Source: Epiperipatus broadwayi (taxonomy: Eukaryota; Animalia; Onychophora). From it: a DNA stretch of 64,000 bases. The DNA lies in the NCBI GenBank assembly GCA_028023455.1, contig JAQFVV010000006.1:15872001-15936000 (forward strand), read 5' to 3'. A program made the position numbers and the translations under genes. The notes under the pieces are model-generated. The model saw nothing but the letters and a program-made list of their open reading frames with translations. It did no database searches and had not been told where the DNA came from. Shown here piece after piece: positions 5,050 through 57,965 of the stretch (positions are counted from its first letter, which is position 1; each line of letters opens with the position of its first letter).

Positions 5050-5700
5050 TTTTAATGACATCTAATACAAGCTTTAGGAATCAAGAGATGTCAGATGCTG
5101 CCTAATAAAGTCTTATCCAGCACTGCCATATCCAAATAAAGGAACTTAATATGATAAAAAATCTAAGATTATCATAATAGATGGAAACTAAAGTGTTTTC
5201 AATTCTATATAACTATGTAGAGAAATACACTTGACTGGGAAAAAAATAATATTTTTTTTTAGTTTGAGCTGGTAGCTTGATAATATAACAAAAAATGGAA
5301 ATGACTGTTAGAGGAAAGACGAATTAGATCCTAGTTCAAAAATATCCTAAAAAATTTCCTCACTGATGAAAGCCATAAGCTAGAAACTAGTTTAACAATA
5401 TTTGGATAGGACAGTGTGGAATAAGGATTTATTAAGGAATACTATATGACATCTATTAATTATTAAATCTTACACTAGATGGCTTTATAACAGAAAATAA
5501 AAATGACTGCTAGAGGAAAGATGAATTAGATCCTAGTTCAAAAATATCCTAAAAAATTTCCTCACTGATGAAAGCCATAAGCTAGAAACTAGTTTAACGA
5601 TATTTGGATAGGACAGCATGGAATAAGGATTTATTAAGCAATACCATGTGACATCTACTAATTATTAAATCTTACACTAGATGGCATTAAAGTAATGAGA
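5050..5700. mobile_element. HHR family A (subfamily A2) fold-back element with two tandem ~202-bp units
   Basis: Direct repeats at ~5285-5483 and ~5487-5690 each contain cctcaCTGATGAaagccataagctaGAAActagtt (cores at 5363 and 5565). 5050-5148 is an inverted copy of the unit's 3' end. Confidence 0.8.
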
Positions 5701-5964
5701 ATAGAAGAATTACTAAAAGTGATATGTTTTTTTTTTCAGCATGACTGGAAGTTTCTTATAAAACAACAGTAAAAAAGATAGCTTTTTTTAAAAATATGTA
5801 TATAAGTAAACGTTAAAACAGTTTTTAAATAGCTCACTTCATTTCAAAAATTTTCTCACTCTTATTGAAGAAGAGAGAGAGAAAAGACCTATATTAGGAT
5901 TGCCAACTTTCAGATAGTTAGGATTGTTCTAGCATTAGTTAGGACTTGGTAGATATTCATTTAA

Positions 5965-6511
5965 CCTGAAGGTAAAACTCTCCATACAATAGGACACTCA
6001 GTGCAAGCCAGAGTAATCAATAGATGCTAGAAGGTTTGAGCCTAAAATCCCCATCTAGTGCCTACTCTTCCAATACCCTCAGACTAGTTTCTAGCTTATG
6101 GCTTTCATCAGTGAGCAACCTTGGATCTGAGAGCACTGCACCTAGATCTTAGGATCTAATGCAATCCTCCAGCAGCCACCTTTTATCTTTTTAGTTAACT
6201 ATAAAGCTTTGAGTCCAAAATGAAAAAAACAATAATGTTTTCAATTCAATCTCATTTGCTTCTATAGTCATATAGGTCTGAACTAGTTCAGCATCTATAT
6301 ATTTTGGTGATTTTTTAATAACCACAGTCACTATAATCCTATTGACAGGAAGAGTAGGCATTAGATAGGGATTTTATGCACAAATCTTCTAACATCCTAT
6401 TGATTACTCTGGTTTCCACTGAATGGTGCTTATGCATGGAAAGTCTTGCCTCTGTGTTATCAGAGTGTGTAAACATAAAGAATGGTGATCATATGATGTT
6501 TTGTGGTTAAA
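5965..6511. mobile_element. HHR family A fold-back element with one-sided tail and 15-bp TSD
   Basis: 5975-6070 and 6347-6450 are inverted copies. Tail gtgtaaacataaagaatggtgatcatatgatgtttt lies on the right only. Flanks are tagatattcatttaa (5950-5964) and tagatattcctttaa (6512-6526). Confidence 0.85.
6078..6115 (-). ncRNA. Minimal type I hammerhead ribozyme (family A), intact core
   Basis: Minus strand: CUCA-CUGAUGA-A AGC CAUAA GCU A-GAAA-C UA G-UC-UGAG. Stem I is CUCA/UGAG, stem II is AGC/GCU, stem III is 2 bp around palindromic CUAG, and the cleavage triplet is GUC. Confidence 0.85.
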
Positions 6512-6649
6512 TAGATATTCCTTTAAAGCATATACAATCAATGTCTGGATTTTTTTAAACCAACAAAGATTTTTATTTGATATCAAATTTAAATCACAAA
6601 ATAGATGAAAATGAGTCCACTTCAACTTATGTTAAATTCTTAAATCTAC

Positions 6650-6920
6650 CCTGCACAGTTTGGGTAGTTGATACAGTGACTTGGAACCAGGAGGTCCCAG
6701 GATCAATTTTGGCACTTGCAGTTCTGGTGCTCAACTTATGAACTCCCAAACAATGGAGCCATATGTTTTTTACCCTGTGCAGTTTGATGTAGTTGGTAAA
6801 GCATCTGACATGAATCCGACATGAAATCAGAAAGTCCCAGGATTGATTCTGCCACTCGCAGATTTGCCACTCAAACTTCTTATAAACTCCTGAGCAATGA
6901 AGCCATTTGTCTTTTTTCCC
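6650..6920 (+). mobile_element. Two tandem degenerate tRNA-derived SINE-like units
   Basis: Two ~125-140 bp similar units (ccctgcacagtttg...gtcccagga...aaactcc...caatg.agccat.tgt) with A-box-like tagttggtaaagc and a decayed B-box. Confidence 0.5.
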
Positions 6921-6983
6921 TTAAAAATCTACCTATACAATAAACTATGGTAATAACATAAATCACCTTAGACATTTATTCTG

Positions 6984-7188
6984 TTATTAAAACAGGCAAA
7001 ACTCTCCATACAGTAGCACCACTCAGTGCAAGCCAGAGTAATCAATGGATGCCAGAAGGCTTGTGCATAAAATCCCCATCTAGTGCTTACTCATCCAATA
7101 TTCCCAGACTAATTTCTGGCTTGTAGCCTTCATCAGTGAGGAGCCTCGGATCTGAGAGCACTGCAACTAGAAATGGTGTTCATGTGAT
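6984..7188 (-). mobile_element. HHR family A element, short form with tail and 13-bp TSD
   Basis: Starts ...caggcaaaactctccatacagtagcacc and ends with tail aatggtgttcatgtgat. Flanks are gacatttattctg (6971-6983) and gacatttactctg (7189-7201). Confidence 0.85.
7103..7140 (-). ncRNA. Minimal type I hammerhead ribozyme (family A), intact core
   Basis: Minus strand: CUCA-CUGAUGA-A GGC UACAA GCC A-GAAA-U UA G-UC-UGGG. Stem II GGC/GCC is a compensatory version of AGC/GCU in the 6078 copy. Confidence 0.8.
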
Positions 7189-8029
7189 GACATTTACTCT
7201 GATCAGTTTAAATTTAAATATACAAGGAAAGCAGACAACCGACAAACACTCAGCTGATTTACATTTGGCTCTTATTGTTATAGGTTTTCTAAATGTTTAC
7301 TTACAAAATTAAGTGAAGTGAATTTCATCTTTTCATCTGTTTTGTAGCTTAACTTGCTACCAGTTGGTTAAAAAATGTTGTGCTGGATTGTAAAACACGA
7401 ATGTTGACTGGTGTTTGCTTTATATGTAATTCACTAAAGATCAGAACTTGGAATAGTAAACTGGTGTGATTGTGGGTTGGCTACCTAAAAAAATAAGATT
7501 ATTTGAAGAGAACAGTCATTTTAGGGTTTACCTGATTTGGATTTAGCCTTGGAGATAGATGTTATTCTTTATTTACGATTTCCTAACTATGCAATGAATT
7601 TTTTTAGCAATGTTCTTCATGCATTTAACACAAATCCTTTTTGAAAGTCCAGTAAGTAAATTTGATTTAAGGTTTACTAAAAATTTTACTTCTTCATATT
7701 TGTCTGACAGTTTCAACTGTCTAGTTATCTTCTTCAAGACTATATCTTCATTTTCTATCTCTATTTTTTATGTAAATAAAGTAAAATATATATAATTCTA
7801 ATGACATCTGCTAGACAATTGAAACAGGATTATTGGATAGAAGGATTGTGAAAAGGAAATATTTTTAGAAGTTTATTTAATATAAGCAGTACAAAAAGAA
7901 TGAAAGATGATGAAGTTTATAATGTTTACTGAAGAGTATGTTATTTTACTAATTGTGCAAATACTTACATCATGTTTTCTATATTTTAGGTAACTAATGT
8001 CATTATCAATTTCAACCACTACTGATCCA

Positions 8030-9780: not shown

Positions 9781-11615
9781 TCATTATTTATTGACTTCAT
9801 ATATTCAGAATCCACTATATCTTATTTAATATCGCAATGGCTTTTCTATTCAGTATATTACTTTATCTTATAGTTTTATTAATAAAAATAAATTAATAAT
9901 CGAATGCCTTTATTGATCAGGACTTTGTAAGAAATTCGGGTACCGATAGTTCCCAAACTGGAATAGATCCAAAGATCGTAAATTCCAGAATTTGACACCC
10001 TATCACTTCATAAAATTACACACAGTAGGTGCGTTAATTAATTAATTTTATAATTATATCTTATATAATTTACACAGAAGTACTGAAAATCCCAGCGAGC
10101 TATATACAAACTAACCGTCAATAAACGTAAGTTAAGAGTGAACCATCTATACACTTTAGCTTGGATCGTATAAAATCATCTCATTTATTGGTGTATTATC
10201 ATGCGGAGCGTAATTTATATGCACCAACGTAATTTCAAGTCAACTATAGGCTATATATACAATTAATAATTGCGAACCTCTGTTAAAGTTTTCCGTAGGC
10301 CTAATTTTTTGTCTAATGCTGTCCCTGATGCTTAATCATAGAGCCAAGAGACTCTCTCAAATCTTAAAACCTGCTTTCCAGCAGTTAATATACATTACTG
10401 AATATTTTAAACTTTGAAATTCCTTTGTCTAAGACATTTTGACTTTTTTCCATATCTAATTTGTTAAAAATAAAACTCTTTTAAATTCAAGAGATTGATA
10501 GACAAGTATAGATGAATAGATAAAACGAATGATTAATTTATACAATGCCAATAGTTATTATTTATTTAATTTATGAAACCAGTATTTATTTGAGTTACAA
10601 TAGCTCTGAGGGAAGAAAAAAAACACTTCATCCATTTACTATCAACAGTTAACATGTTTTGCTGTAAAATGTAATAAAAATGAATATAAGGGATTATATC
10701 AAATTACATTTTATATTCAGGGAAATTATCGCAACTTCTGTTTTAAAGGATGTTTTTACAAATTAGGTTGTGTTAGGGAAGATATCAAAAGTATTTTTTT
10801 TTTAATAATAAAAGGTAATAGAAATAGAAAAGTATAATATTTTATTGCTACTTAAGATAATCTACGTAAATCAATAATACATCATCATCATCACTACTTA
10901 CATGCCAAAGAATAACTGCAAATCATCTATATAAACACAGTATATACCATCATTAGCAGATCTAGTTATATCTAAAATGGCAGTTCCTGCATATCGATTT
11001 CACAGTCTTTCTTAAGCTTTTCTTTCTTTTAGACATTCATAGTCACTTCGTTTATTCAGAACATTCCTTTTATCATCATTAGTATAGATAAGTGGAATGT
11101 CCTTTAGCCTAGGTGTTTAAGATACTTCTCTATGAATAAAAAAGATACAGATATAAAGACATTATTTATTTATTTTTTTACCAAAAGGGTCACATACTGT
11201 AGCTAGAATGAATTTAATTGTCCATACTAGTAATGATATTAGGAGTTAATCCTAACACATTAAATATAATAATAGATATTGTATATATAGAATAATTTTT
11301 TATACCAATGATTAATTCATAGATCTGAGGGCTAAAGATAAATAATAAACAGTGTTGGACTAAGGGTGCTTTTTGCTGCCTTATAGAATAAGATGGTTCG
11401 TCAAAAATTATATTCTATTTCTAATTCAACAGATTTTTGTCTCTTCTTTTTTTTTCTTAGTTTCATCAGTCACATAGAGTCCAGTCATTACAAATTTCGC
11501 ACATTATCTGTTATCATCTGATATTAATTGTGATAGAGGCATATGTATTGTGTAAGAACATCTCCATTCTGTAACTACACAGATAGCAATTCTACCTCAA
11601 TTCATTTTTTATTTG

Positions 11616-11845
<230 letters not shown>

Positions 11846-11889
11846 TAGTTGGAATGGCTATACTCATTTGTATAAGCTACTAATGATAA

Positions 11890-12310: not shown

Positions 12311-12428
12311 GTCAAGCGTTGTTAGCCGAGAGGTCAGCGCAGCTGCCTTGCAAGCAAGCAGTTGGTTGCAGATAGTCATTGCAGGTTCGCCTCCTGACCG
12401 ATGCTATGACATATGAGAAGAAAAAAAT
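12311..12428 (+). mobile_element. Short tRNA-derived SINE, copy 1
   Basis: A-box tagccgagagg, B-box ggttcgcctcc, 3' tatgacatatg plus an A-rich tail. TSD is aaattatgttaatatag. Confidence 0.8.
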
Positions 12429-12769: not shown

Positions 12770-13840
12770 TGCTACCTACTGTAAGATTTAGTAACTAATA
12801 GATGGAGATGATAGTGACTAGTAAATCCCTATCCAGTTGTTTCTTAACCAATATTTTCTGATCAGTTTCTAGCTTATAGCTTTCATCAGTGTGGAACTTT
12901 GGATCTTGGAACATTACATCTGGACCTTTAGGATTGAATGCATCTTCCTCCTATCAGCTATCAATTACTTCTCTGGTTTGTATCAAGGTATCTACCCAAA
13001 ATGTTTTCAATCTAAAGTCAATGTACTTATTTTGTCATGAAGATCTGAAACTAGTTCAGTAGCTATATATTACAATATCCTTAGCTTTTAATAATAATAA
13101 TCACTTAGCCACAGGTTAGAAGTGTCTATAATTGTTTAAAAACCTGAGCATAGCATACTTTCTAGTGTTGTCCCATACAAACTGAGCATATCATAATTGT
13201 TTCCTTATCCAGTGTTATCCTATCCAAAATTTTTATACCTATGGCTTTCATCAATGTGCAACTTTGGATCTTGCAACCTTATGCTTGGACCTTTAGGATT
13301 TAATGCACCTTCCTCTTAGTGGCCATCATTTATTTTCTGTTTTACTATCAAGATATCAACCCAAATTAAAGAAACAAATGTTTTCAATCTAATCAATCTA
13401 TCCCTATAGTCATATAGATCGAAAACCACCTTAGTAGCTATATATTATAATGTCCTTAGCTTTTAATAACTATAAACCTTTAGCCATAGGTTAGAAGTGC
13501 ATGTAGTTGATAAAATCTAAGTATCTTATAATATATAGATACTGAATGGAGATCAATATGATTATACAGGAAAATCATCTTAGATTGGAAATATTTATAT
13601 ATTTATCAATTTGGGCTGATATCTTGATAGTAAAACAGAGATAAATGATCACTGGTGGCTGGAAGATGCATTATATTCCTAAAAATTTAAGCATTACTGC
13701 AAGATTCAAAACTCCTCACTGATGAAGGCCATAAGTGAGAAACAAGTCTGGGTATATTGGATAGAACAGCATTGGAGAAATATTTATTAAGCATTATCAT
13801 ATAACTTGTATTAATTATTAAAACTTACAGTACATGTCAT
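12770..13840. mobile_element. HHR family A (A2) compound element: two tandem minus-strand units plus an inverted plus-strand unit
   Basis: ~370-bp direct repeats at 12830-13200 and 13200-13540 carry HHR relics (tttcatcag at 12881, tttcatcaa at ~13246). The inverted unit at 13590-13830 has cctcaCTGATGAaggccataagtgaGAAAcaaGTCtggg at 13712-13752. Confidence 0.75.
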
Positions 13841-16453: not shown

Positions 16454-16670
16454 ATATTTAATAATAAACAATGTTTTTTATACTTTATACTTTCACTTTA
16501 TTTTTAAATAACATACTACTAAATAAATAAAAACTACTCATAAAGTTTGTTGTTTTAATAACAGAACCAAAAATATGCACATATAGAATCAATAAAATGT
16601 AACATTAATATCATTGAAATAGAATTAAAACTCTATTTGAAAAGATGATAGTATGATCATAAAATAATTC

Positions 16671-17033
16671 AATGGATATTCACTCTCAAGATCCTGTGAA
16701 ATTTAAATACCAGAAGTGACCAATGGATAATCACTCTAAAGATGTTGTGAAGTTCAAATACCAGAAGTGACTAATGGATAATCACTCTCAAGATCCTGTG
16801 AAGTTTAAATACCAGAAGTGACCAATGGATAGCCACTCTCAAGATGCTGCAAAGTTTAAATACCAGAAGTGACTAATGCATAATCACTCTCAAGATCCTG
16901 TGAAGTTTAAATGCCAGAAGTGACCAATGGATAGGCACTCTCGAGATGCTGTGAAGTTTAAATACCAGAAGTGACCAATAAATATGCACTCTTGAGATGC
17001 TGTGAACTTTATAAATACCAGAAGTGACTGATG
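16671..17033. repeat. 51-bp minisatellite, 7 copies
   Basis: Unit tggataatcactctcaagatcctgtgaagtttaaataccagaagtgaccaa starts at 16672, 16723, 16774, 16825, 16876, 16927 and 16978. Confidence 0.95.
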
Positions 17034-17293
17034 TACTGAGTTATAATCTTTATTTGATCTTAATTTAGAAGTATATATAACATGAATTTGTCATTCATAC
17101 ACTACTCATGCATATAATGTCTTTTATTTTATATAATTAAACTATCATATAGCGCATAATTATTGATAGTTTTTTTTAATGGAATTTTTTATAAAAGCAA
17201 TATTTTTATAGAAAAAAAGAACTCATACAGATTCAAATAAATTTTAGGATAAATTGATGGGTACTTTCAGTGTAAGTTCAATATTAATAGCCT

Positions 17294-17465
17294 GGGTGCA
17301 GGGCTCTCAGATCCAAGCCTCATCATGAATGAAGACTGCAAGCTAGAACCTAGTCTGAGAATATTGGATGAGTACTCACAACATAGAGATTTTGATACAT
17401 AACCCTTCTAGAAACCATTGATTACTATGACTTCACTGGATAGCACTGCTGTATGGAGATAGTTG
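17294..17465 (+). mobile_element. HHR family A copy, ribozyme core decayed
   Basis: Matches the reverse complement of 6990-7170 (gtgcagggctctcagatcc...agctagaacctagtctgagaatattggatgagta...gctgtatggaga). The core is mutated. Confidence 0.75.
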
Positions 17466-22520: not shown

Positions 22521-23706
22521 AAAATATATTATATGTTACAAAAGAACTTTTAAAATAAATACAAAATTTTAAATTTATATCACTTTTCCAGCTACGGTGT
22601 TATCAGCTAAAAAATATGTTACTTTCTCTTTCACTTTCACATTACTTCTCCCCTCCCGCTTCGTCTAATTCTTATATTTTGTCTGCTAATTTACCTCCGT
22701 TGATTGGTTAATGACTTTTTAGCGCGAACAAATTTACACATTTTAGTTTTATAACAGACTAGACTTTTAAAAATAAAGAATTGATGACGTAATGTCTGAA
22801 AATATTACTTAGACTATATTTTTAAATTCAATTATAGTTTTATCAAAATTATTTAAACTTTAAAAACAATTATTAAAATAATATTTAATATTTCAACTTT
22901 TACTTTAAGGATCGATGGCAATTATATTTAGTTTCCTAATTCACAAACTTTATTATTATTTTAACAAGCGTGTGTGTGAAGGTATATAATATACAGTCAC
23001 GTGTTTACTAACTTTATCAAATGATTTTTTATTTACGTCTCGGTCTAAATTACCAAAACTGATATATTTTATAAAAAATTTGGAAAATAATTTAAAATTG
23101 TAGAACTAAATATAATTCTCACCATCCTAAAGTTTATTTTAAAATATATTCTATTAATTTTGACTATTAAATATAATTATAACACTACATATAGCATTTA
23201 TTTAATTTATTAGTTTTAAAAATTTATATTCAAATTATTAATATACTTTTAAACTATTTATAGCTGTATTATTTTATATGGCCAGCTTTTACAACCATAA
23301 GCAAGAATATAATTAAGCTTTATTTAACTGTTTTCTCTTAAAATAATCTATTACATTTTTATATACCAGGTATTTTCAGCTTTAAATTGTACTATAAAAT
23401 TTAATTATCCTACTATTATTTATATATCATACAAATATAACTTAAAATTTAAAATTTTTTAGTAATTGACCTTTCTACCTTATTATGACCTACAGACAAG
23501 GGCACAATATATATATATATATATAAACACAAGTGGCAAGCTGTGGCTTGTTGGGCCATGTGCATCTTTTTGAACCTAATTTTACAGTTCTTTTTATCAT
23601 GATAGATACATTTTTAAATTTCACCTTATAATTTGTAAATAAATATTTTGATGATGCTAGAAGAGAAAAAATGCATTTCACGATATTGTATCTTGAATTT
23701 AGTCTT

Positions 23707-24035
23707 AAACGTTCCAACATCAGATTGTCAATGAAATGGAAGGCTGAAGAGTTGTGAGTTGGAATAGTTTGAAGCCTGTTCATTAAAGTATGAAGATTGA
23801 CTATCTTAATATAAAGCTGAGCACTGATTATAGATATGTGCGAGGATAGTAATCTAGACCAACTGATGATTGCTGGTTTAGCATGAAATATGTATATTGG
23901 TGATTATTTATCTTTTCAACATGTGTGTGATCAGGTGGGTCAGCAACATGAGAGTAGTGGGTCATGTGAAAGTCTGAGTTCGAATCCTGCCTATATTACA
24001 TATATAAATGCAGGTTTAAGCCTGTGCAATGTATT
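23707..24035 (+). mobile_element. HHR family B element (HHR plus downstream B-box)
   Basis: Colinear with 38059-38397 and the reverse complement of 25425-25730. HHR at 23858-23901, gagttcgaatcc B-box at ~23976-23987, 3' hairpin caggtttaagcctg. Confidence 0.8.
23858..23901 (+). ncRNA. Minimal type I hammerhead ribozyme (family B)
   Basis: ACCAA-CUGAUGA-U UGCUG GUU UAGCA U-GAAA-UA UG UA-UA-UUGGU. Stem I is 5 bp, and the cleavage triplet is AUA. Confidence 0.8.
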
Positions 24036-25392: not shown

Positions 25393-25531
25393 ATTTATAA
25401 AACCTGATATTGTGGGAAGGTGTTTAAATATAAGGAATTTGAACTCAGACTGCCAAGCACCCTTCAATTATCCACACTATCTCATACCACTGATACACAT
25501 GACCACACACCTGTAGAAAAGATAAATAATC

Positions 25532-25575
25532 ACCAATATACATATTTCGTGCTGAACCAGCTCTCATCAGTCGGT
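25532..25575 (-). ncRNA. Minimal type I hammerhead ribozyme (family B)
   Basis: ACCGA-CUGAUGA-GAGCUG GUU CAGCAC-GAAA-UA UG UA-UA-UUGGU. Confidence 0.85.
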
Positions 25576-26008
25576 CCAGATTATCATCTCCCTCACATAT
25601 ATATAATCAGTGCTCAGTTTATATTAAGATAGCAAATCTTCATACTTTAATGGACAGGCTTCAATCTACTCCAACCCCCAACTCTTCAGCCATCCATATC
25701 ATTGAAAATCTGAGAATGGAAAGCCCAAATCCCATACTAATGCCAATAATATTGCCATGCCCATGTTGACCTCATCACTCTGATGCCTCTTGTATAGGAC
25801 CTTATCCATTTAAATATGTAGAAGAGGGATGGGCAGGATGCAGGCTTGATGTGAAAATATTTGCAATACAAGCATTCTTCATATACCTGGAGCTTAATTT
25901 GTAAATATAGGGGATTTGAACTCAGATTACCAAGCACCCTTCAATTATCCACACTATCTCATACCACTGATGCACATGACCACTCACATGTAGAAAAGAT
26001 AAATAATC

Positions 26009-26052
26009 ACCAATATATGTATTTCATGCTGAACCAGCACTCATCAGTTAGT
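26009..26052 (-). ncRNA. Minimal type I hammerhead ribozyme (family B), fully paired
   Basis: ACUAA-CUGAUGA-GUGCUG GUU CAGCAU-GAAA-UA CA UA-UA-UUGGU. Stem I is 5 bp, stem II 6 bp and stem III 3 bp. Confidence 0.88.
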
Positions 26053-26513
26053 CCAGATTATCATCTCCCACACATATATGTGTGTGCATCTATTTATTTA
26101 CAGTCACATTTACAGTATATTTTTGTGTAAACATTAAAATTATAATGTTTTTTTTTTGTGTGTCATAAACTAAAATAAATATTTAATTGTACATTTATTC
26201 TAATTTAATACATAAAAACTCCTATTACAATTTCAATATTTAGGTACTAAATTCATGAAAATTTTTAATATATGTAAGTGTTATGGGAAGATCTTTGGTA
26301 ATAATATGCAAATTTGGTGAACATCTCATTTGCTATTACATGAGATTATGTGTACCAAGTTAAAAGCAGTTATCTTTTAGCTTAAAGTAGAACCACACAA
26401 ATGCTATTTCTAATTTCGTAATCACTTAGCTTGGATTATTGATTTCAATTTATGGTTACCTGGTTATATTATAGCTAAATGTTTATTCTAATTTAATATT
26501 CACATAACTTAAT

Positions 26514-26662
26514 AACAGCAGCAAACTCTCTATATAGTAGTGTCCCCAAATATTGTATCTATTGATTACCAAGACTTGCACATGGTGGCACCACTTTATA
26601 AAAAGAGTTTGCTATTGTTATTAACAGCCTGTGTAAATATATGAAATGATGATCATGTGATG
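26514..26662. mobile_element. HHR family A short fold-back (no ribozyme) with tail
   Basis: aacagcagcaaactctctatatagtagtg, then the inverted arm ...gacttgcacatggtggcaccac...aagagtttgct, then tail taacagcctgtgtaaatatatgaaatgatgatcatgtgatg. Confidence 0.7.
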
Positions 26663-27004
26663 CAGAAAGCTTCCATTATAATTTCGTTGTTTACATCTCG
26701 AGTCCAAAATTTAATTTAAATATATTATAAATGTCTGTGAGTGAGAGAGAGAGATAGTATGGGACATCTGACTTTCTTTGCCCATGGATGATTGCAATAT
26801 TATGGGATTAATATTATGTATGCTCTGATAATAAATAATGGGAATTTCCATGTAGTTTTCTAGTAAATTTCAACTATGATGTAATGCAAACTGAGATCAC
26901 ACTATTTGTCAATATTACTTGTCTGACAAAGTTTTAAAATCATGTTCATAATATATATATATATATATAAATTCATTGAAAGTAGTCAACACTTAGATAA
27001 TACC

Positions 27005-28020: not shown

Positions 28021-28052
28021 TCATTATTTAAAGTAAATTAAGGAATTTAAAA

Positions 28053-28967: not shown

Positions 28968-28970
<3 letters not shown>
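28053..28970 (+). mobile_element. Inverted copy of the same PLE (right arm), riddled with small deletions
   Basis: Reverse complement of 27045-28020 with many 1-2 nt deletions, mostly in homopolymers. It lacks the last ~40 nt of the left arm. Confidence 0.85.

Positions 28971-29040
<70 letters not shown>
28971..29040. repeat. (TA)n microsatellite
   Basis: 70 bp of alternating TA directly abutting the right PLE arm. Confidence 0.98.
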
Positions 29041-36200: not shown

Positions 36201-37352
36201 ATACTTATTTACTTATAATTAAGTTTCAGTTAGAGTGATGTTTAGTAAATTCTAAACAATTTTACCGATGTCATTCGTCCCAAACATCGTAGATAGTAAT
36301 TTAAAGTGAGAATTCTACTCTCACACTCTCCTCAACAGTACTTCAGATTTGCTCATATAAAAGAATTTGAGTCGTAGGAATAAGAGGATTCCTTTTATTC
36401 CTGCATAAATACTATATCTTGTGTTGTAGAGGGAAGTATTCATTTATTATTTAACACTCGCAAAAGACGCATGCACAATTAGCTTGAAAGGCTGATCTTT
36501 GAATATAATTCATTAAATACAGTATATTTATAGCAATATAAAATTCTAAGTTTCTCCAAATATTTCTGTCAATGAAGAAATTATTAAACTGCCTTACTTT
36601 AACCAGTTTATTGGGTCTTTTAAATGGATAATTAGTTTTCTATGAGAGTGGTGAGGCAGTTTAATCTCAAACTGCTTATTTAGCCACATTAGCTCACCAC
36701 CCTTTTTGGCCACCCACAAAAAAATTGGAAAGAGATTGCATACACAAATGATACTTTTGATAAGGCTTGATATAAAAAAAAACTGGGCAGAGACTACAGA
36801 GATGCTATCAGCTGACTACAGGAGACATATTGCTGGTAGTGGTTGAGAAACTGGGGAAGATGCTTCTCAGTATTAGTGACCAATAACAAATGAGGTTTTT
36901 GAGCCTCAATTGATGATTATAATATATTCATAATATACCTTAGGGATTGCCACAGAAATAAAAAGGAGTGCCAAAAATCAGATGGGGAAAAACAACAGTC
37001 TGCGAAGTAATTTTCAGCCGATCTGCTATGTTCTGAAAGGACTTCCATCAGACAAATGTGAAGAACATCTCAATCTAATCAAACAAATGTAATTTGGCCC
37101 TGCAGGGATTAGCCCAGTGATAGAGTGTCAGACATTGGAGCATTAGGTCTTTAGAGTTCTGGCACTTCCTGTCTTAAACTTCTTATGAAGTTCCAAACAA
37201 TGAACCATTCAATTGTGTGTTAATAGAATTGGAATTACATGCTTTCTTTTCTATTTTGATTCATTCCTTAACTACTTATCCAGTTATCCGTATTTTCTTA
37301 TAAGATGAGAAAAATATATCAATGTTTTGTATGGTAATTGGGTACAATAAAC

Positions 37353-37438
37353 AGCTAAAACTCTCCATCCAACAGTTCCGTCCATATTAAAAGCTTGCAT
37401 AAGCATAGGAAATGGTGATCATGTGACGTTTAGTGGAT
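37353..37438. mobile_element. HHR family A minimal element (left end joined to tail) with 18-bp TSD
   Basis: agctaaaactctccatcc...aagcttgcataagcataggaaatggtgatcatgtgacgtttagtgga. Flanks are taattgggtacaataaac (37335-37352) and taattggatacaatacac (37439-37456). Confidence 0.7.
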
Positions 37439-38058
37439 TAATTGGATACAATACACTAATCTGTGTATTAAATGCACTCAAATCTGTCATCACACATATA
37501 TAACTAAATAGCATTAATAGACTTCTGTTATTTAGTTCGTGTTTAAAATATAGAAATGTATCCAATGTTTAAACGAATGCATATCGAGTCAAAACCATGG
37601 CAAATAAAGAGTTAAAAGAGTTAACATAAAAACATAGTGTCTTTTTATGCTATCTCATTTCGCTCTTTACAATTTATATGCTCTAAATAGTAAAAAAAAT
37701 ATTATCTTAATGATAATAGCTAAACAAAAGATAATCTAAAATACTGTAAAACCAAGCTAATAAACTCTCAACCAATAGAGCGATTTTAAGAAAATTATAA
37801 ATATTTTTTTTGCCAACTCACTTATTTCGTTAATAATTCTAGAATATGTTTGCAACTTTGACTCCGCCATTAATAAATTTGATATAACTTTTGTTAATGC
37901 GCGAAGTAATTGAAATAAAAAAAATAATTAAAAGAAAGTAATGGTTTGAAATATTACTCAAGAAGTGTCTAGTCTGAGGAAAGAAAAATCTCTGTACATA
38001 ATATTGTAAACATAGCTCTTGTATTAATTAAATTTGGAGTACGCACTAACAAGGGCTT

Positions 38059-38397
38059 TGAACGTTCCATCATCAGATTTTCAATGAAATGGAAGGCTGA
38101 AAAGTTGTGGGTTGGAATAGTTTGAAGCCTGTCCATTAAAGTATGAAGATTGGCTATCTTAATATAAAGCTGAGCACTGATTATATATATGTGTGAAGAT
38201 AGTAATCTGGACCAACTAATGATTGCTGGTTTAGCATGAAATACGTACATTGGTGATTATTTATCTTTTCAACATGTGTGTGATCAGGTGAGTCATCAAT
38301 ATGAGGTGGCACTGAGAGTAGTGGGTCGTGTGAAAGTCTGAGTTCGAACCACGCATATATTACATATATATAAATGCAGGTTTAAGCCTGTACAATG
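38059..38397 (+). mobile_element. HHR family B element, ribozyme inactivated
   Basis: Colinear with 23707-24035. Core at 38211-38254 reads CUAAUGA (G5A) and has ACA at the cleavage triplet. Stem III keeps palindromic UACGUA. Confidence 0.8.
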
Positions 38398-39224
38398 TTT
38401 TCTCTTAAATAGTTTTTTTTTTTTGGTAATAGATAAACAATCGTGACTGCAAATAAAAATAATCAAACTGTTAAGTCATGTGATACTTGAGCACCAGAAC
38501 GGACAAAATGGGTTTCAATCCAGGAATTTTCGGTCCACATATCCTTCACTTATCACTGTGTTTAACAAGGCACTCATTCAAGGCTGTGAAACTTTTAATG
38601 TAGAATCGTATCTTAAAAGGTTTTTATTCAGTATCATATCACGTGAAAAAAATTGACCAATCATTCAGCAATACATTTCAGAATGGTTATGTTCCTTCAT
38701 ATTGATGCGTTTATCATTATTAATATATGACAAGAAATTGCTATATTTGATAAAAGATTAATGTTTCTCCAAAGCAGCTGATAATGGAGGTTTCCTGAAA
38801 CTTATGTATACTATAGAGTGATTGGTTAATTTTTTCATGTGATATGGTAGACCAATAATGAATGCTTCACAAACTGTGATTGGAATTGACATTTCTTCAT
38901 TCTTAACATGTATGTAATGATAAATAATATTTTTGTACTTGATTTATCAAGTCACATGATAATTACTAAGTATATTTAATTAATGGTTGAACTATCTTCA
39001 ACCGGCCATGATCAATAATCCTTTACAGTAGAAAAATGATCACTTCGTAGATTGTCATTAATTTTATAAAATATATCACACATTTTGAAACTCTATAATA
39101 ATAAGAAAAAGAATATATATGTATAATGATAAATACTGATACACATTGGGTAAATGTAAAGTTAGATGATAATTGTCAAAGTTGAACTACTCTCCCGTGC
39201 TTTTTTTTGCTATAGCCAAAACTT

Positions 39225-39625
39225 TTTACAGTAGTGTCACCTAGTGCAAGCTCTTCTAATCAATGCATGGTAGAAGGTCATGGATCATAATCCTTATCCA
39301 GTGCTTTTCCATCCAATATTCCCAAACTAATTTCTAGATTATGACCTTCATCAATGAAGAACCTTGCATCTGGAAGCACTGCACCTGAATATTTGGAACT
39401 AACACACACACCCCTCCAATACTCACCTTTTACCTTTTTGTTTAACTGTAAAGCTATCAACCGAAACTGAAAATCCAATAAAATTATCAATCCAAATTAG
39501 TTATTCTGTATAGTCATATGGCTTTGAATCCAGTTCAGGGTCTATAGTTTTGGTTTAATTTTGCTACTGTTTGACTGCTTGTGTAAGCATGAAGAAAATA
39601 TGATCATGTGATGTTTTAAGGATTT
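39225..39625 (-). mobile_element. HHR family A element with tail
   Basis: Left arm, HHR relic at 39321-39358 (UUGAUGA), internal region shared with 6120-6330 and 57580-57800, tail gcttgtgtaagcatgaag...atgatcatgtgatgtttt. Flanking near-repeats are aactttttacagtag and aaccttttactgtag. Confidence 0.75.
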
Positions 39626-39963: not shown

Positions 39964-40070
39964 GTCAAGCATTGGTGGTCGAGAGGTCAGTCACAGCTGC
40001 TTTACAAGCAGTTGTTCCGGGTTAGCAAGTTCACTTCCCAGCTGATACTATGACACATGAGAAAAAAAAA
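39964..40070 (+). mobile_element. Short tRNA-derived SINE, copy 2
   Basis: gtcaagcattggtggtcgagaggtcag...tatgacacatgag(A)9. TSD-like aaatt(t)tctcaataat / aaattcccaataat. Confidence 0.8.
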
Positions 40071-41145: not shown

Positions 41146-41557
41146 TAATAATTTTAATCATGGGCTATAAAAACAAATTGGATAATGTTGAAGTCCTAAA
41201 AAAAATTCAAAATGAAAATCCACTAAGATGTTGGAATCTCAGACTTATGTATGGAATTGGCTAAAGTCAAAAAAAAAGATGTTGCAACAAACACTGCTAG
41301 TTGTCATGGCAACATAAAAAATTTCCCAACATTGAGTATTGCATCTAATATCCTTATCACACTTTGCCAGCTTATTTGCATTTAATTTTCTTCCGCATTT
41401 TGTTCAATTTTATTAATTTTTTTTAAAATTAGTTTCAATATGCATATAAATATTGATTTTAATCATGTTCAAAAAAAAATATTGTTAAAAACTTGATTGC
41501 TATTGAAGAAAAAAAAATTACTAAATGAAAAATCTGTAAAACAATCAATGATTTACA

Positions 41558-41768
41558 GGCAAAAGCTCTCCATACAGTAGCGCCACTCAGTGCAAGCCAG
41601 AGTAATCAATGGATGCCAGAAGGCTTGGGCATAAAATCTCTATCTAGTGCCTACTCATCTGTATCCATTGATTACTCTGGCTTGCACTGAGTGGCGCTAC
41701 TGTATGGAGAGTTTTGCCTAGCTGAATAACAGCTATGAGCAAGCATAAAAACTGGTGATCATGTGATT
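41558..41768. mobile_element. HHR family A young fold-back (no ribozyme) with tail and 11-bp TSD
   Basis: 41558-41660 is followed by a near-perfect inverted copy atccattgattactctggcttgcactgagtggcgctactgtatggagagttttgcc, then the tail. TSD aatgatttaca at 41547-41557 and 41769-41779. Confidence 0.88.
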
Positions 41769-42511
41769 AATGATTTACACTATTTAAAAAAGAAGTTGAA
41801 AAGCTTACAGATAATGAAAAGGATTTCAGTTTGAGCAGTTTACATTGCAATATTAAGGAATTAGAAACCCTTTTATAATGGGATTAATCAAAAGCTAATG
41901 GCAATATCAATGTGGTAATTATTTATGGAAAAGTTAATCAACTTCTTGAGGAATTTTTATTCTCTCCTACTATAAGTATTGGCCCTGTAAAGGAGTTTAT
42001 TACCAGTGAAGCATGCTTTACCAAATTTCAAAAAAAAAAAAAAAATACATAGGGTTACAAAGCAGGACCACAGCAAAAAAACAGAAAATTTGAAATTAAT
42101 AATCTGAGAGTTTTTATTAGGATATTGTAAACTTGCATTTTAATTTTATGCCTTTAAAAGATGAATCTTAGTTTTCATTAATATATTGCTATTTAAGTTC
42201 ATGTGCCTTTTTACATTTATGTTTGTATTTTTGTTTTGAATGGTGACATTAGTTTTGCTTGTGGTTCTGGAATGAATTATCGCTAAATACATGTAGTTCA
42301 ATGTAAGATACAACAAACTAATGCTATAACGAATGGCATTATAAAACCATTAATTCATTAAAAAGACTTCTCTCTATTATCATTTGTTAATTTCCAGAAT
42401 TATATACTTATTTATTTTTTAGTGAAATACAAACATACCTTTTTTTTTTAAGAATTCAGTATTATACAAATGCAATAGGAATTCAGTACTATACAAATGC
42501 AAATTAATAAA

Positions 42512-43831: not shown

Positions 43832-43942
43832 CGTTTTGCATTGGTGGTCAAGAGGTCAGTGTGACTGCCTTGTACTTGCAGCAGTTGCCCGGGTTGTGGG
43901 TTCGTGTCCCGGCCGATGCTATGACACATTAAAAAAAAAAAA
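43832..43942 (+). mobile_element. Short tRNA-derived SINE, copy 3
   Basis: GCATTGG...CCGATGC acceptor-like stem, B-box gggttcgtgtccc, tatgacacatt(A)12. TSD is aaaagtagaatt. Confidence 0.85.
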
Positions 43943-44840: not shown

Positions 44841-44885
<45 letters not shown>

Positions 44886-46265: not shown

Positions 46266-47271
46266 ATTTTTAATTTCGCAAACTTTAATAAATACAAGGT
46301 GTCCCTCAAGGGCAAGGCTTGATTGGGTGCAATCAGCCTATTTGGTTCTTATCCGACCCTGAGTAACAACATATAATTAAATAGCATGGAGGCATTTAAT
46401 TCCTCCATTTTTAACTCAATAAATAAGTAACGTAAATAATAGTATTTTTTCTTTAACTTTATCGCAATTAGATAATAATAATAAAAAAACATTCCAGATA
46501 TGAATTCTTAAAATTTGAAAGGAAATAAAGTTTAATTATTTAGAACGTTAATGAAAGATTAGCCTTTTTTAGTTTATAAAATTGTTAGTTAAAAATAAAT
46601 GTCTGTTTTTATTAATTTTTTTTATTTTAAAATAGTTCTCCAACTGTATTATCAGAACGAAGAAGCGAGGGTAAGGAGCAACTTGAAAGAAAGTTTTAAA
46701 AAGCTTTAAAAAAAATGATGATATTCTGAAATTATTATATAAATTAAATAATTACTGATGTAAGTCGTAATCCCGGAGGAGACGAAAGATTAAAAGCATA
46801 CTTGTTCAGATAATGAAATATGTAGACAAGCTCCGATACCCCGTTCTTTCTTTCATCTTTTTGTTATCTGTCTGCGTTTTTTCCATTCCTTCTAATTATT
46901 TATTTATCTACTCTTAACATAACTATAGACATACTTTCTTTTTTTTCTAAGAAATGGTGTTATATGTAGATTTCAGGTGTGATAGAGTAGTGGATTCCAA
47001 GCTAAAAATTCCAGGTTCGATTCTCATCTAAGTAATATGATGATTTTTTTAAAAATAAAATCTCGCTTCAGTCACTTGAATATCACAAGACCTTCTGAGC
47101 AACTAACCGGTCATACAATTATTATTATTGTAAAGCAATGCAACTTCTTTTCTCATTTTAGAGTATGCAAGGATATTCATGAATTAAAGATTATCAATGG
47201 AAACTTAAGGCTACCATTTCTGTCCTTGAATGACGGATGAGCTCCTTAGAGACAAAACCTATTCGATTATT

Positions 47272-47482
47272 AAAACAGTAGCAACGTTCTCCATACAATA
47301 GTGCCCACCTAGTGCAAGCCATGGTAATCAATGCTAGAAAGTTTGTGCATCAAAATCTCTACCTAGTGCCTACTTATCCAATATCTCCAATCTACTTTCT
47401 AGCTTATGACATTAGTTGGCATTATTATATAAAGAAAATTGCTGGTTGTGTAAGCATAAGAATTGGTGGTCATGTGATGCTT
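47272..47482 (-). mobile_element. HHR family A element truncated inside the ribozyme, with tail
   Basis: Left arm runs to ...tttctagcttatgac (stem II), then tail gctggttgtgtaagcataagaattggtggtcatgtgatg. Confidence 0.75.
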
Positions 47483-52895: not shown

Positions 52896-53176
52896 AGCAA
52901 AGGGCATATTTGAACCATGAGTATCGATGCAGTTACTATAAAATAAAAAAATATGATTATAATATGATACAGACTCTACATTAATAGATGTTTTATTCTA
53001 CTTTTATGATTATTGGATACTGGTTATCTTTGTCCCCTACCAATCCCAAAAAGTGTTTATTTTTCTTTTGGTAAATTCTATATAGTGTGTAAGAATTAAA
53101 TTAGCATCAAACATGATTTGAAGATCATATTCACTACAAGGCAGAACTTTTTCTGGTAGCAGGAAAATTCAATAGC

Positions 53177-53456
53177 AAACTCTCCGTCCAGTAGTGTCAG
53201 CCTGTCCATACCTTAATAATCAATGGATGCACAAAGGTTTGTGCATAAAATCCCTATCTAGTGTCTACTCATCCAATATCCCCACAAGCTAGAAATTATT
53301 CTGGGGATATTAGATAAGTAGGAATTAGATAAGGATTTTATACACAAACCTTCTCTGATCACTAAGGCTTATACTGGGTGACAGAAGAATTTGATATTTT
53401 GATATTGAATTAACAGCTTGTGTAAGCATGGAAATAGTGATTATATGATGTTTTAT
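53177..53456. mobile_element. HHR family A fold-back whose junction lies at the ribozyme
   Basis: Left arm ends atatcccca (53284). Right arm starts caagctagaaattattctgggg. The tail follows. Flanks are caggaaaattcaatagc and cagggaaattcattacc. Confidence 0.8.
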
Positions 53457-54260
53457 CAGGGAAATTCATTACCAGTCAGCATATGGATATCTAGATTTTA
53501 TTATGTGTTATTGTAAAACTCTGTCAGATTTTAAATATATAAAGGGCCCTTATTATGAATAAATTAATAAAATGAATATGAGAAATCAGCAGTACAACAA
53601 ACTTCTTATTTATGGACTAAAGGAGTATTAAATAAATCATGTTTCCATAATATTCAGCAATCTTTTATTTCTTGCACCCAATTAAAATAGTGGAAAAAAG
53701 ATTTCAAAACCAGTCTGTTGTTTTTTTTCAAGACTTATGGTTACCCATATTACATCTTTACGAATTATTTCAGGAACAGATTTAAACTCAATTAAAATTT
53801 AATTTTTGAAGCTTAGAATCTTATTAAATTCTATTAGTTATTCTGCCTTTAATTCTTATTTTTCTTCTCTAAGGAGTAATTCATTTTTTGAGTTTTTTAT
53901 TTTGCTTTTATTTAGTGGTCTGTTTTCTCTATTTTAATTTTTTCATTTTATAAAATGTTCTCTATATTTTTTTTTCTTCTGGTCTGTTATTTTGTCTCTA
54001 TGTTTTTAATTTTCACATTAACTACCGTTTTATCTAGATATATTATGAATTTGCAAATTTTAAGTTTTTACCAGTGCAAGTTTCACCTTTTAGTTCAATC
54101 CTATCCCAACCATCCATTAGCCCAGAGGTCAGATCAATTTCTCACATTATAGATATATTAGAAGCTTTCACTTTTTCAAGTAATCCATATGATACATGTT
54201 ACAATTTAACTTCATATATACATTATTTTTAGAGATACTTAAACTTAACTTTATATAATA

Positions 54261-54370
54261 GTCTTGCATTGGTCGTCGAGTGGTCAGCACGACTGCCTTG
54301 CACTAGCAGGCAGTTGCCCGGGTTGCGGGTTCGCGTCCCAGCGGATGCTATGACACTTAAAAAAAAAAAA
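54261..54370 (+). mobile_element. Short tRNA-derived SINE, copy 4
   Basis: A-box tggtcgtcgagtgg, B-box gggttcgcgtccc, tatgacactt plus a poly(A) tail. TSD is actttatataata. Confidence 0.85.
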
Positions 54371-55574: not shown

Positions 55575-56045
55575 ATTATATATTTATGATCACACCCCTC
55601 CACAAGATGTTAAAAGCGAGTAGAAACCAGTTCCTACCTTGTGTAAGAGTGGTATATTGAAAATTACATTACAGTCATATTATTCCTCAAGTGGATAATT
55701 TCTAGTCTAATGAATGACTAATAAAAATTCTTAACATACTTTCACCAAGTGGTCTGCGTCAAAGTTATGAGGGCAGTAAGTTTGACACATAAATTAAACT
55801 GTAGTAATTCACACACATATATATATATATACTGAATAATGATAAAGATGTGTGCAAGAGATTGTGATCTGGGACAACTGATGAGTGCTGATTCAGCACA
55901 AAATGTGCATCTTGGGAATCATACATCGTTTTTATATGTCTTTGATCATATGATTATGATTACACTCCTCCGCAAGGTGTAAAAAATGGATAGAAACTAG
56001 TCGCTACCATGTGTAAGAATGGTATAATGAAAATTACACTACAAA
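55575..56045 (+). mobile_element. Divergent family B partial tandem (~372-bp period) with HHR relic at 55874-55915
   Basis: ~105-bp direct repeats at ~55580 and ~55950. Between them ACAA-CUGAUGA-GUGCUG AUU CAGCAC-AAAA-UG UG CA-UC-UUGG (G12A). Confidence 0.65.
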
Positions 56046-56759
56046 AATATTATTCATTTATTAGCCTTAATTAGTATTTTAATTATGAATCAGATTTATT
56101 TGATATAACCATTATGAATAATTTTTGCAATTCATTTAAAACTGTCTTCAATTTATAGTAAAATCAAATACCTATTTGTATATTAATAATCTATTACATT
56201 GAGATTGCATAATTTATTATCCAATTAGAGCTGTAATAGTGTTTTTGGTTTGAATAATGTAAAGATAGCCTTCTTTAATTGCAAAAGTGACTGTTTTTAT
56301 TAAATTAGTAAAAATGGAAAACATTTCAGTTAATTGGAAAAAATAATTCGAGAGAGCTTATAAACATATTTGCGGTAGTTTGTTTGTTTTAAGTGGCTTG
56401 ATAAAGAAATTGGTTCTGATATTTAAAAAAATTAAATCACATTAATATAGAAACTTTCGTGGTAATAAAAATATTTATCTGAAAAAGAAAATAATTCTTG
56501 GATTTAAAAAAATCCCTTGGTCAAATTAATTTTATTAAAAATAATTTAGTAGTAATGAAAAATACATTTCTGCTCTTTTTAATAATTTTTTTATATTCAT
56601 ATACCACAATTGGAAGCTTCTATCAGTCATTTAGCTTTAAGTCTATGTCTGATTTTTTTTCTTTTGTTTTGTTTCAATATTTTTAATATTTAATTATCTC
56701 GACTGATTACCTTTAAAATGGTTACTTTTTGGGCTTAGATAATTCGACTTCCATAATTT

Positions 56760-57310
56760 TCCCAGATAATAAGATTGTTTTATACCAGTTTTGACTTTCT
56801 TATTTAACCTTTTTGCATGCTGGCTTATTCCCTGGGTGATTAATAAATTGTATGCGATGCACTATGACTTCTCCTTTATTGAAGTTAGAAATCTCTCAGC
56901 CACTATGCCCAGAAAAACCTGTTAGCCATCTTACCTTCCCTTTTCATTCCCCACTCTAAGTTTTTCCCATATTCTTCTCTATCCTGCTCCATCCCATTTC
57001 CACAACACCATCTTTGTCCACTCTATGGGCTTCGAATCTAGATCCCCCTTATCTTTTTCCAAACCCAGCATAAAACCCAAGAACCCACTTTCTGTATAAT
57101 CACTTTGTTTATATTTATTCTCCCACAACTTCATTATTTATACCCTTTCTGCTTGTAAGCATTTACATTCAATTAGCAGATGCCTAATATTTTTCATGCC
57201 TTCCTTACATAACTTGCAGACTAAATCACCCACATTTTTCCATTTATGTGTATATTCTCTTGTTGCTAACGATCCTGTTTGATCTTTAAACAGAAAACTA
57301 CTTTTCTTGC
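56760..57310 (-). mobile_element. LINE 3' fragment with C-terminal CCHC zinc knuckle
   Basis: Minus strand LFKDQTGSLATREY...CKLCKEGMKNIRHLLIEC (CX2CX8HX4C). Confidence 0.7.
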
Positions 57311-57454
57311 TATTATTGTAAATTAACTCCCAATATTCTGTTTACTTCTATATATATTTAAACTTTTTTTGCTATCCATACTAGTTCTCTATCTTTCAAA
57401 CTCTCTATTTTTGATTAATGCATCTATTCTTCTATAGAAAACTCTCCATACAGT

Positions 57455-57965
57455 AGTGCCACCTGGTGCAAGCCTTAGTAATCAATAGGTGCAAAAAGAT
57501 TTGTGCATAAAATACCTATCTAGTGACTACTTATCCAATATGCTGAGACTAGTTTCTAGCCTGTGGCTTTCATCAATAAGGAGGTTCGTATATGAGAGCT
57601 GCTGTGCCTAGATTTTATATTCTAATCCAACTCTTCAGCAGTCACCTTTTACCTCTTTAGTTAACTGTAAAGCTGTGAGCCCTCAATGAAAACACAACCT
57701 TTTTAATCCAAGCTTATTTGCTTGATAGTCATATAGATCTGAACACAGTTCAGTAGCTATAAATTTTGGGGTATTTGGTTTTTTAAACTCGCAGTTACCA
57801 TAATCCTATGAGTAGAATTGGTGTAATTCTACTAAAACATCAGATGATTATCATTTCCTATGGGTATGCAAGCTGTTAATACAGTAGAACTACTTTGTGG
57901 AGAGTTTACAACTGTATTATCAGCTTGTGTAAGTATATGAAATGGTGATCATGTGATGTTTTACT
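57455..57965 (-). mobile_element. HHR family A element with short right arm and tail
   Basis: aaaactctccatacagtagtgcc left arm, HHR relic at 57544-57581 (UUGAUGA; stem II AGCC/GGCU), right end tgtggagagttt, then tail cagcttgtgtaagtatatgaaatggtgatcatgtgatgtttt. Confidence 0.8.

Follow-up and report, generated by a model that had tools for sequence, protein, structure and literature searches.

What are the many small fold-back elements in a 64-kb stretch of the genome of the onychophoran Epiperipatus broadwayi, and how do they enter new sites? The stretch (G000:C6:15872001-15936000, from contig JAQFVV010000006.1) is called the window below, and positions in it are counted from its first letter. 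It belongs to a genome of 5.6 Gb with about 28% G+C. An initial annotation of the window described one abundant family, here family A, as fold-back mini-elements with hammerhead ribozyme motifs, a tail on one side and long target site duplications (TSDs). It proposed that these are non-coding, ribozyme-processed RNAs retrotransposed by the reverse transcriptase (RT)/GIY-YIG protein of Penelope-like elements (PLEs).

Our analysis makes it likely that family A represents a non-coding retroelement with a unit of about 450 nt that does not move autonomously, belongs to the animal non-long terminal repeat (non-LTR) retrozyme type, is a derivative or a parasite of PLEs and is copied in trans by a PLE enzyme. 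The family is a clear case of a known kind of element and not a new class. The idea of PLE-derived retrozymes is already published (PMC7229834; 10.64898/2026.07.22.740005), and the insertion architecture is one already described for PLEs.

Family A members were located by self-BLAST (four copies against the window) and by BLAST with a reference monomer. The reference is a natural copy, L031; an earlier majority-rule monomer served solely for mapping. The unit order was read by mapping pieces of the element, designated TAIL, INT, HHR (the hammerhead) and ARM, onto 20 genome loci. The sample used for the insertion footprint consists of the window copies and 32 genome loci. A genome search with a 221-bp mini-element gave 2,332 first-look candidates, of which the best 40 were scored, so that hits resembling the query are favoured; a search with the internal region gave 2,958 candidates. 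The exact 23-nt core of the tail occurs 15,554 times in the genome, while the reversed control occurs 0 times. Assuming about 10% decay per site, this suggests that the genome total of family A is on the order of 100,000 insertions.

In the sense of the hammerhead, the pieces follow each other as ARM, TAIL, about 20 nt, INT, HHR and then ARM again (L031, L030, L021 and others). The TAIL measures ~55 nt, INT ~230 nt and the ARM ~113 nt from the cleavage site, and the monomer ~450 nt; same-strand tail cores in the genome listing are spaced about 430-465 nt. Since this order is found in partial tandems, the element is a unit of ~450 nt. Some copies exceed one unit (L021, L022, L024, L026, L028 and L029), and others are one-armed and 5'-truncated (L023, L009 and L031). 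As claimed in the initial annotation, the family is non-coding: there is no open reading frame (ORF) of at least 130 aa in 5050-57965.

What appears as a tail is part of the unit itself, delimited by two alternative 3' ends with about 50 nt between them. The first of these, site 1, is found just past ...GGAGAGUUUUGCCU (GGAGAGTTTTGCCT plus about 8 nt); the second, site 2, closes the tail about 50 nt further downstream, at ...GATGTTTAGTGGTTT. Family A copies terminate at ...GCCUCUGUG or ...GUUUAGUGGUUU, without an A-run. A consensus fold of the ARM and tail proved weak (-3.5 kcal/mol, one compensatory pair) and was left unused.

Each fold-back is a pair of 5'-truncated copies of the 3' part of this unit, placed head-to-head. 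The fold-back mini-elements of the initial annotation are real structures, but they are not the element itself, and their junctions vary from copy to copy. The inner ends, i.e., the 5' truncation points, and the arm lengths vary among the window copies in BLAST with the reference. An alignment of the junctions of genome hits resembling the fold-back at 41558 revealed at least five junction types, each at a microhomology of 2-6 nt (CATCCA, GCCT, ATCC). The CATCCA microhomology arises because the ARM holds the inverted pair TGGATG...CATCCA.

The flanks of these insertions are equally characteristic. TSDs were found in 24 clean events from the window and the genome loci; their length ranges from 8 to 17 bp and is mostly 11-15 bp. 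Thus the variable TSD length, which the initial annotation took as a sign of target-primed reverse transcription, is upheld. In a scripted check of 30 head-to-head insertions, 27 had the tail core past one outer arm end and not past the other. On reading the three exceptions, the tail of L016 and L030 (scored "zero") turned out to be decayed or internally deleted on one side, and L009 (scored "two") is a compound locus. With these exceptions read, the one-tail rule holds in 29 of the 30 insertions. If the start site were chosen independently at each end, the probability of such an outcome would be at most 0.5^29. Where two tail cores lie close together in the genome listing, their orientation is (-,+), (+,+) or (-,-) and never (+,-), which fits outward-facing 3' ends together with tandems.

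A comparable footprint is known from PLEs. In PLE insertions an inverted pseudo-LTR (pLTR) completes the insert, a 31-bp tail is present on one inverted pLTR, TSDs are 8-10 bp long and junctions show microhomology; pLTRs also trans-mobilise foreign sequence (Arkhipova et al. 2013, PMC3846280). One-sided tails of 30-40 bp, inverted 5'-truncated copies and TSD variation resulting from a variable nick distance were described by Craig et al. (2021, PMC8557442). Frangieh et al. (2024, PMC11167929) showed for a PLE protein that it nicks as well as extends the two strands; it begins reverse transcription at a pair of internal RNA sites, which enclose the tail and are located about 90 nt downstream of the hammerhead cut.

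Family A shares with PLE insertions the pLTR-like partial tandems, the adjacent inverted 5'-truncated copy, the tail at one end, the variable short TSDs and the microhomology junctions. As in PLEs, its hammerhead lies upstream of the start of reverse transcription. All structural hallmarks published for PLEs are thus present: 5'-truncated copies placed head-to-head, partial tandems, a tail at one end only and a minimal hammerhead of type I whose helix III is palindromic. There are differences as well. The RT start sites of family A are about 113 and 165 nt past the cut, compared with about 90 nt in the studied PLE (PMC11167929), and the tail has ~50 nt instead of 30-40. Unlike PLEs, family A is without an RT/GIY-YIG ORF, and no sequence similarity was found between it and the PLEs sampled from this genome.

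The following course of insertion could produce this footprint. A PLE RT/GIY-YIG enzyme, provided in trans, would copy a family A RNA into the genome; it would nick both target strands about 8-17 bp apart and prime reverse transcription on both of them. One complementary DNA (cDNA) would start at internal site 1 and the other ~50 nt downstream, at site 2, the end of the tail. The two cDNAs, both usually 5'-truncated, would then be joined head-to-head at microhomologies of 2-6 nt, and the outcome would be an apparent fold-back with outward 3' ends, a one-sided tail and a variable TSD. Short products that do not contain the hammerhead would probably be dead on arrival. The PLE protein as the enzyme, the priming on both strands and the hammerhead cleavage are the steps that we infer.

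A stricter version of this scheme seems possible, although on balance doubtful. In it, the two cDNAs of each event are started coordinately at the two RNA sites, with one protomer of a dimeric Penelope ribonucleoprotein per target strand. Trans-mobilisation by PLEs whose own A3-U8 hammerheads are unrelated to family A in sequence is a further possibility. The near-absolute one-tail rule would mean coordinated starts, not an independent choice at each end.

The hammerhead is the second line of comparison. Its majority form is CUCCUCA-CUGAUGA-A-AGC-CACAA-GCU-A-GAAAC-UA-GUC/UGGGGAU, where the slash marks the predicted cut. Helix I has 6 bp (one of them G·U), helix II has 3-4 bp, and helix III consists of A-U and C-G with a 2-nt loop. 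Such a helix III could not be stable alone, but by analogy its ACUAGU palindrome resembles the dimer-type minimal hammerheads of PLEs (PMC4209133). Among 49 copies the pair 10.2-11.2 is A-U in 42, G-U in two and G-C in two, and the core is intact in 23. In 21 of 37 copies none of the 11 fixed core bases is altered, compared with 9.7±3.8 for composition-matched control sites of the same copies; only 0.14% of 5,000 control sets of 11 sites reach 21. Conservation of the core thus exceeds the background of the family itself, and this speaks for selection acting on the source copies. The initial annotation had named conservation at the neutral level as evidence against its proposal, and the core is not at that level.

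Minimal dimeric hammerheads are known in PLEs, where they sometimes form opposite-strand pairs (Cervera & de la Peña 2014, PMC4209133). The hammerhead of family A resembles them in being type I with a short helix I, a 2-bp helix III and a palindromic loop suited to dimers, and also in its massive copy number and in opposite-strand pairs 100-700 bp apart. It differs from them in helix II, which has 3-4 bp instead of 6-8 bp (PMC4209133). Additionally, a single base is left unpaired on the 5' side of helix II in the hammerheads published for PLEs, which form the pair G10.1-C11.1 (PMC4209133); family A has a symmetric A·A instead.

Is cleavage by this hammerhead needed for insertion? In 29 of 48 unselected arms the 5' start lies upstream of the cleavage site, and these arms were therefore copied from RNA that was uncut at that site. 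Exactly at the 5' end of the cleavage product (reference 337) start two of the 48 arms, 53177-53284 in the window and one in L028. Five of the 48 starts fall within reference 331-343, where the local density is about twice that of the neighbouring bins; this enrichment is suggestive, not significant against those bins. Cleaved RNA may thus be used sometimes, and the counts suggest that hammerhead cleavage is not required for most copies. Ribozyme processing, which the initial annotation proposed, is unsupported as a requirement. A dispensable cleavage agrees with the behaviour of an Anolis PLE, whose hammerhead mutants insert normally in vitro (PMC11167929).

Animal non-LTR retrozymes have been proposed to be non-autonomous PLE derivatives (Cervera & de la Peña 2020, PMC7229834; Li, Clavereau & Pollet 2026, preprint 10.64898/2026.07.22.740005). 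Like them, family A is built of a non-coding unit that is low in GC and a few hundred nucleotides long, and each monomer contains one type I hammerhead (CUGAUGA...GAAAC-UA-GUC, 6-bp helix I, predicted cleavage). It also shares with them the presence of both monomers and tandems, TSDs longer than 4 bp, a very high copy number and the occurrence of PLEs in the same genome. Its monomer of about 450 nt, found in copies of 1-2 units and in partial tandems, is slightly above the published range of 170-400 nt. The hammerhead of family A belongs to the minimal dimer type with an open helix I, has A·A at 10.1/11.1 and is not of the canonical loop-loop type. Family A is known here from DNA, mostly as dispersed head-to-head truncated pairs, in contrast to the long tandem arrays of retrozymes.

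The published model for animal retrozymes (PMC7229834) offers the most probable alternative to the direct copying proposed above. According to it, the hammerhead makes a circular RNA that undergoes rolling-circle reverse transcription; cleavage and ligation are essential, and the enzyme does not have to come from a PLE. The multi-unit insertions (L021, L022, L024, L026, L028 and L029), the conservation of the hammerhead core above the control sites and the two arms that begin exactly at the cleavage product speak for it. However, copies exceeding one unit could also come from transcripts of tandem loci, self-pairing of the monomer is not strong, and 3' ends fixed at two sites need a specific start of reverse transcription, such as has been shown for a PLE protein. 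We regard the circular RNA model as rather unlikely, while it is compatible with the multi-unit copies and does not exclude mobilisation by PLEs.

Alternatively, the fold-back itself could replicate, i.e., a hairpin master similar to a short interspersed element (SINE) or a miniature inverted-repeat transposable element (MITE) could be copied whole, so that arm lengths and junctions are inherited. That was the first reading of the search with the 221-bp mini-element: nearly all of the ~40 scored hits, the best of 2,332, span positions 1-213 of the query at 80-91% identity, and several pairs of copies have a common junction type together with the diagnostic tail variant TATGAGC. The reading was dropped after the junction alignment. 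The junctions of the hits differ by several nucleotides, all at microhomologies, which favours repeated formation. As only the best 40 of thousands of candidates were scored, and query look-alikes were thereby selected, the architecture shared among the hits is largely a result of selection, aided by microhomology hot spots. Furthermore, the arm and tail variant of 41558 recurs in 6984-7189, whose architecture is quite different, and the unselected window copies are diverse in arm length. We conclude that fold-backs form anew at insertion; that some mini-elements also propagate as such is improbable.

Movement of a SINE-like element by a long interspersed element (LINE), with the inverted arms resulting from twin priming, is still less probable. 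Variable TSDs of 8-17 bp are compatible with target-primed reverse transcription by a LINE endonuclease, and a probable LINE is present in the window (an 865-aa ORF at 60538-63135, then a start resembling an apurinic/apyrimidinic (AP) endonuclease). However, no poly(A) or simple-repeat 3' end was found in the family A copies examined. Both arms show the same outward 3' end, while in twin priming it is the 5' part of one single copy that becomes inverted. Features such as two fixed ends separated by ~50 nt, partial tandems and a minimal palindromic hammerhead are typical of PLEs and not of LINEs (PMC3846280; PMC11167929). The window does contain tRNA-derived SINE ends with poly(A) at 12366-12426, 40010-40070, 43881-43941 and 54310-54370 (GGGTTCG...CCCGGC...GATGCTATGACAC; repeat family D15). 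These are classical LINE-dependent SINEs, which contrast with the A-less ends of family A.

Finally, there is hardly any chance that family A is a MITE or Foldback DNA transposon moved by a DDE transposase, or a Helitron/Helentron derivative: it is small and non-coding and has inverted arms of 26-380 nt (inverted repeats I17 and I23) with flanking direct repeats, all of which looks MITE-like, but its TSDs are not fixed in length (8-17 bp), its arms are unequal with variable inner ends, the symmetric terminal inverted repeats named in the initial annotation as a sign of such elements are replaced by outer ends that differ by the ~50-nt tail in 29 of 30 insertions, one-armed 5'-truncated and longer-than-unit copies exist, and the TSDs in 24 events do not agree with the TSD-less insertion at TT sites of Helitrons and Helentrons.

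Several points weigh against mobilisation of family A by PLEs as a retrozyme-like unit. Positions 10.1/11.1, where G-C is usual, are A·A in 45 of the 49 copies, and this makes catalytic activity, as judged from the sequence, uncertain. Rfam hammerhead models matched neither at the gathering score nor, across the whole window, at E<=10, and a 121-nt stretch gave no match either; the hammerhead was therefore assessed manually and statistically. The monomer RNA shows no unusual degree of structure: the z of its fold is -1.5 in sense and -1.3 in antisense, and on these values a rod-like monomer fold was dropped. No autonomous PLE with a related hammerhead, ARM or TAIL was found by blastn and nhmmer in 30 GIY-YIG loci and 8 loci with long PLE ORFs, which are a tiny sample of more than 10,000 GIY-YIG candidates. 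The hammerheads of the sampled PLEs have A3-U8 or U3-A8 cores and lie ~20 nt from the element end, compared with 113-165 nt in family A. RNA evidence was unusable: the matching runs are contigs of uncertain kind in which starts, ends and circles are unreadable.

PLEs themselves are abundant in this genome, with more than 10,000 GIY-YIG candidates and several intact PLE ORFs of 750-900 aa. Matches to family A in the 38 PLE loci are independent family A insertions or belong to another repeat family. Two loci were considered as partners and rejected. In L069, the hammerhead-like piece upstream of the PLE is part of another high-copy repeat that ends 227 nt in, and a tail-like motif (L069:6233-6250) is outside the PLE unit, which starts at L069:6173. 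In L013, a GIY-YIG ORF seemed to abut a family A unit; that copy, however, is complete and flanked by a TSD of its own, and ~380 nt separate its end from the GIY-YIG remnant. Neither L013 nor the window gave a tblastn match to the sampled PLE proteins.

Other hammerhead-like motifs were also seen. The PLEs of L064, L065 and L069 have a 3' motif whose core begins with UUGAAAA or AUGACUA, not CUGAUGA, and which lies ~20 nt from the element end, beside (TA)n targets. The repeat at L069:6514-6740 (minus strand) is young and high-copy (1,598 first-look candidates, 93-95% identical). It has a family-A-like hammerhead region in which helix III is a perfect 10-nt palindrome (ACCAATTGGT); the core of this copy carries changes (CUGAGGU, CAAAAC). 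A hammerhead-like motif with a canonical core is found in L040:1169-1204 and L046 (minus strand), close to PLE GIY-YIG copies that lie head-to-head; it has U·U where family A has A·A (CUGAUGA-U-UGCU...AGCA-U-GAAA). A symmetric mismatch beside helix II may be common among the hammerheads of this genome. In runs X1, X4 and X8, which are labelled as three different organisms, thousands of contigs each match family A (5200-7300) at 80-100% identity; the contigs are of uncertain kind, and family A or its close relatives may be common to related species.

BLAST finds 14 family A loci in the window, between 5284 and 57965, with sizes from 89 to ~650 bp. The initial annotation had counted at least 14 elements, most of them with outward-facing inverted 3' ends, and indeed the arms are head-to-head in most window copies. 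The tail that it described on one side is a genuine repeat and is confined to one side in every two-armed window copy; the 41-nt string quoted for it matches, with at most 3 mismatches, only 53414-53454. Tails are listed as repeat family D11 at 6455, 26619, 37385, 41725, 47436 and 57915, and there are further tails at 53410 and 39571. A hammerhead had been claimed for most copies, and the motif CUGAUGA...GAAAC...GUC is found in 10 of the 14 loci, with an intact core in 7. It is missing from three short fold-backs (37350, 41558 and ~26520), its 3' part alone is kept at 47270 and 53175, and 5284-5687 has two motifs. All five of the TSDs named at the outset were recovered, measuring 11-15 bp with 0-2 mismatches.

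At the left end, 5284-5687 (plus strand) is a short relative of family A that consists of two tandem 202-nt monomers (repeat families D9, D16 and D18; BLAST to reference 303-350 and reading of the sequence). Each monomer contains a hammerhead motif on the plus strand, at 5356-5394 and 5558-5596, with a mutated 3' strand of helix I. The next locus, 5965-6511, is a head-to-head insertion with arms on both strands. Its left arm (5970-6345, minus) comprises INT, the hammerhead (6072-6118) and ARM; its right arm (6348-6451, plus) is followed by the tail (6452-6511), and the TSD (5950-5964 / 6512-6526) has 15 bp with 1 mismatch. At 6984-7189, a minus arm (6984-7169) is directly joined to the last ~20 nt of the tail (7170-7189). 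The hammerhead of this copy (~7102-7140, minus) carries the helix II variant GGCU/AGCC, and its TSD (6971-6983 / 7189-7201) has 13 bp with 1 mismatch.

Mostly older copies follow. The minus-strand copy at 12823-13473, with ~70% identity to the reference, has an internal duplication of ~365-375 nt, i.e., a partial tandem (repeat families D17 and D20), and its hammerhead core (~12855-12893) is still intact. On the plus strand, the old copy at 13530-13836 contains INT, a hammerhead (13712-13750) and a variant arm common with the 202-nt relative (repeat families D16 and D18), and the old single arm at 17292-17458 (reference 274-439) has a decayed hammerhead core. A short old fold-back at 26520-26665 combines an inverted arm end of ~30 nt with ~60 nt of arm sequence and the tail, without a hammerhead or a clear TSD. 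The single 5'-truncated copy at 32980-33200 (minus, reference 258-439) has an intact hammerhead core and a reverse-complement tail on its left side.

The smallest member is the mini fold-back at 37350-37438, read directly: 89 bp with 26 nt of inverted arm end and the tail, without a hammerhead, flanked by a TSD of 15 bp with 1 mismatch (37335-37349 / 37439-37453). The old insertion at 39208-39618 consists of a minus copy (reference 115-434, with C3 changed to U) and a plus tail (~39558-39618); its TSD is uncertain. In the 211-bp mini fold-back at 41558-41768, which is without a hammerhead, a minus arm (41558-41659) that starts 11 nt downstream of the cleavage site is followed by a plus arm (41663-41719) and the tail to 41768, and the TSD of 11 bp is exact (41547-41557 / 41769-41779). 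The insertion at 47270-47482 is composed of a minus arm (reference 318-439), filler and a plus tail (47436-47482), with a weak TSD. The fold-back at 53175-53456 has a minus arm (53177-53284) that starts at the exact predicted 5' end of the hammerhead cleavage product, a plus arm (53282-53352), the tail (53410-53454) and a TSD of 15 bp with 2 mismatches (53160-53174 / 53457-53471). Finally, the insertion at 57430-57965 contains a full minus monomer (57438-57883; ARM, hammerhead with C3 changed to U, INT, TAIL) followed by ~30 nt of plus-strand arm and the tail (57913-57963); its TSD is not clear.

The window also holds repeats other than family A. A second family, family B, unrelated to family A in sequence, is found at 23705-23952, 25425-26079, 38043-38358 and 55848-55952, with a 477-nt tandem spacing at 25425/25902 and inverted copies elsewhere. 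A palindrome of ~2 kb at 27045-28971 with (TA)n flanks has several arm segments that are 100% complementary (I13, I15, I16 and I18). It represents an inverted duplication of very recent origin, in which the sampled PLE proteins had no tblastn match. There is a minisatellite with 9-12-nt units in about 25 overlapping copies at 11549-11872 and a tandem array of seven 51-nt units at 16619-17077. The region 60538-63400 is probably ORF1 and the start of ORF2 of a LINE: the 865-aa ORF (60538-63135) has no Pfam match, and the following frame starts as MFCKIAGINIRGINS...LLMGETK, similar to AP endonucleases.

Family A is a major component of this 5.6-Gb genome, and a correct Penelope-type label matters for its repeat annotation; standard repeat maskers would probably split the family or, as was anticipated at the outset, call it a MITE. 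To specialists, the strictness of the one-tail rule, the mostly uncut templates and the canonical hammerhead core, compared with the non-canonical cores of the sampled autonomous PLEs, are of interest. The published claim that PLEs mobilise animal retrozymes is still mostly correlative. The one-sided tail, the two fixed 3' ends, the twin arms and the microhomology junctions of family A provide footprint-level support for it. If the coordinated start of the two cDNAs is true, the roughly 100,000 footprints would make a natural data set for the unsolved mechanism of Penelope integration.

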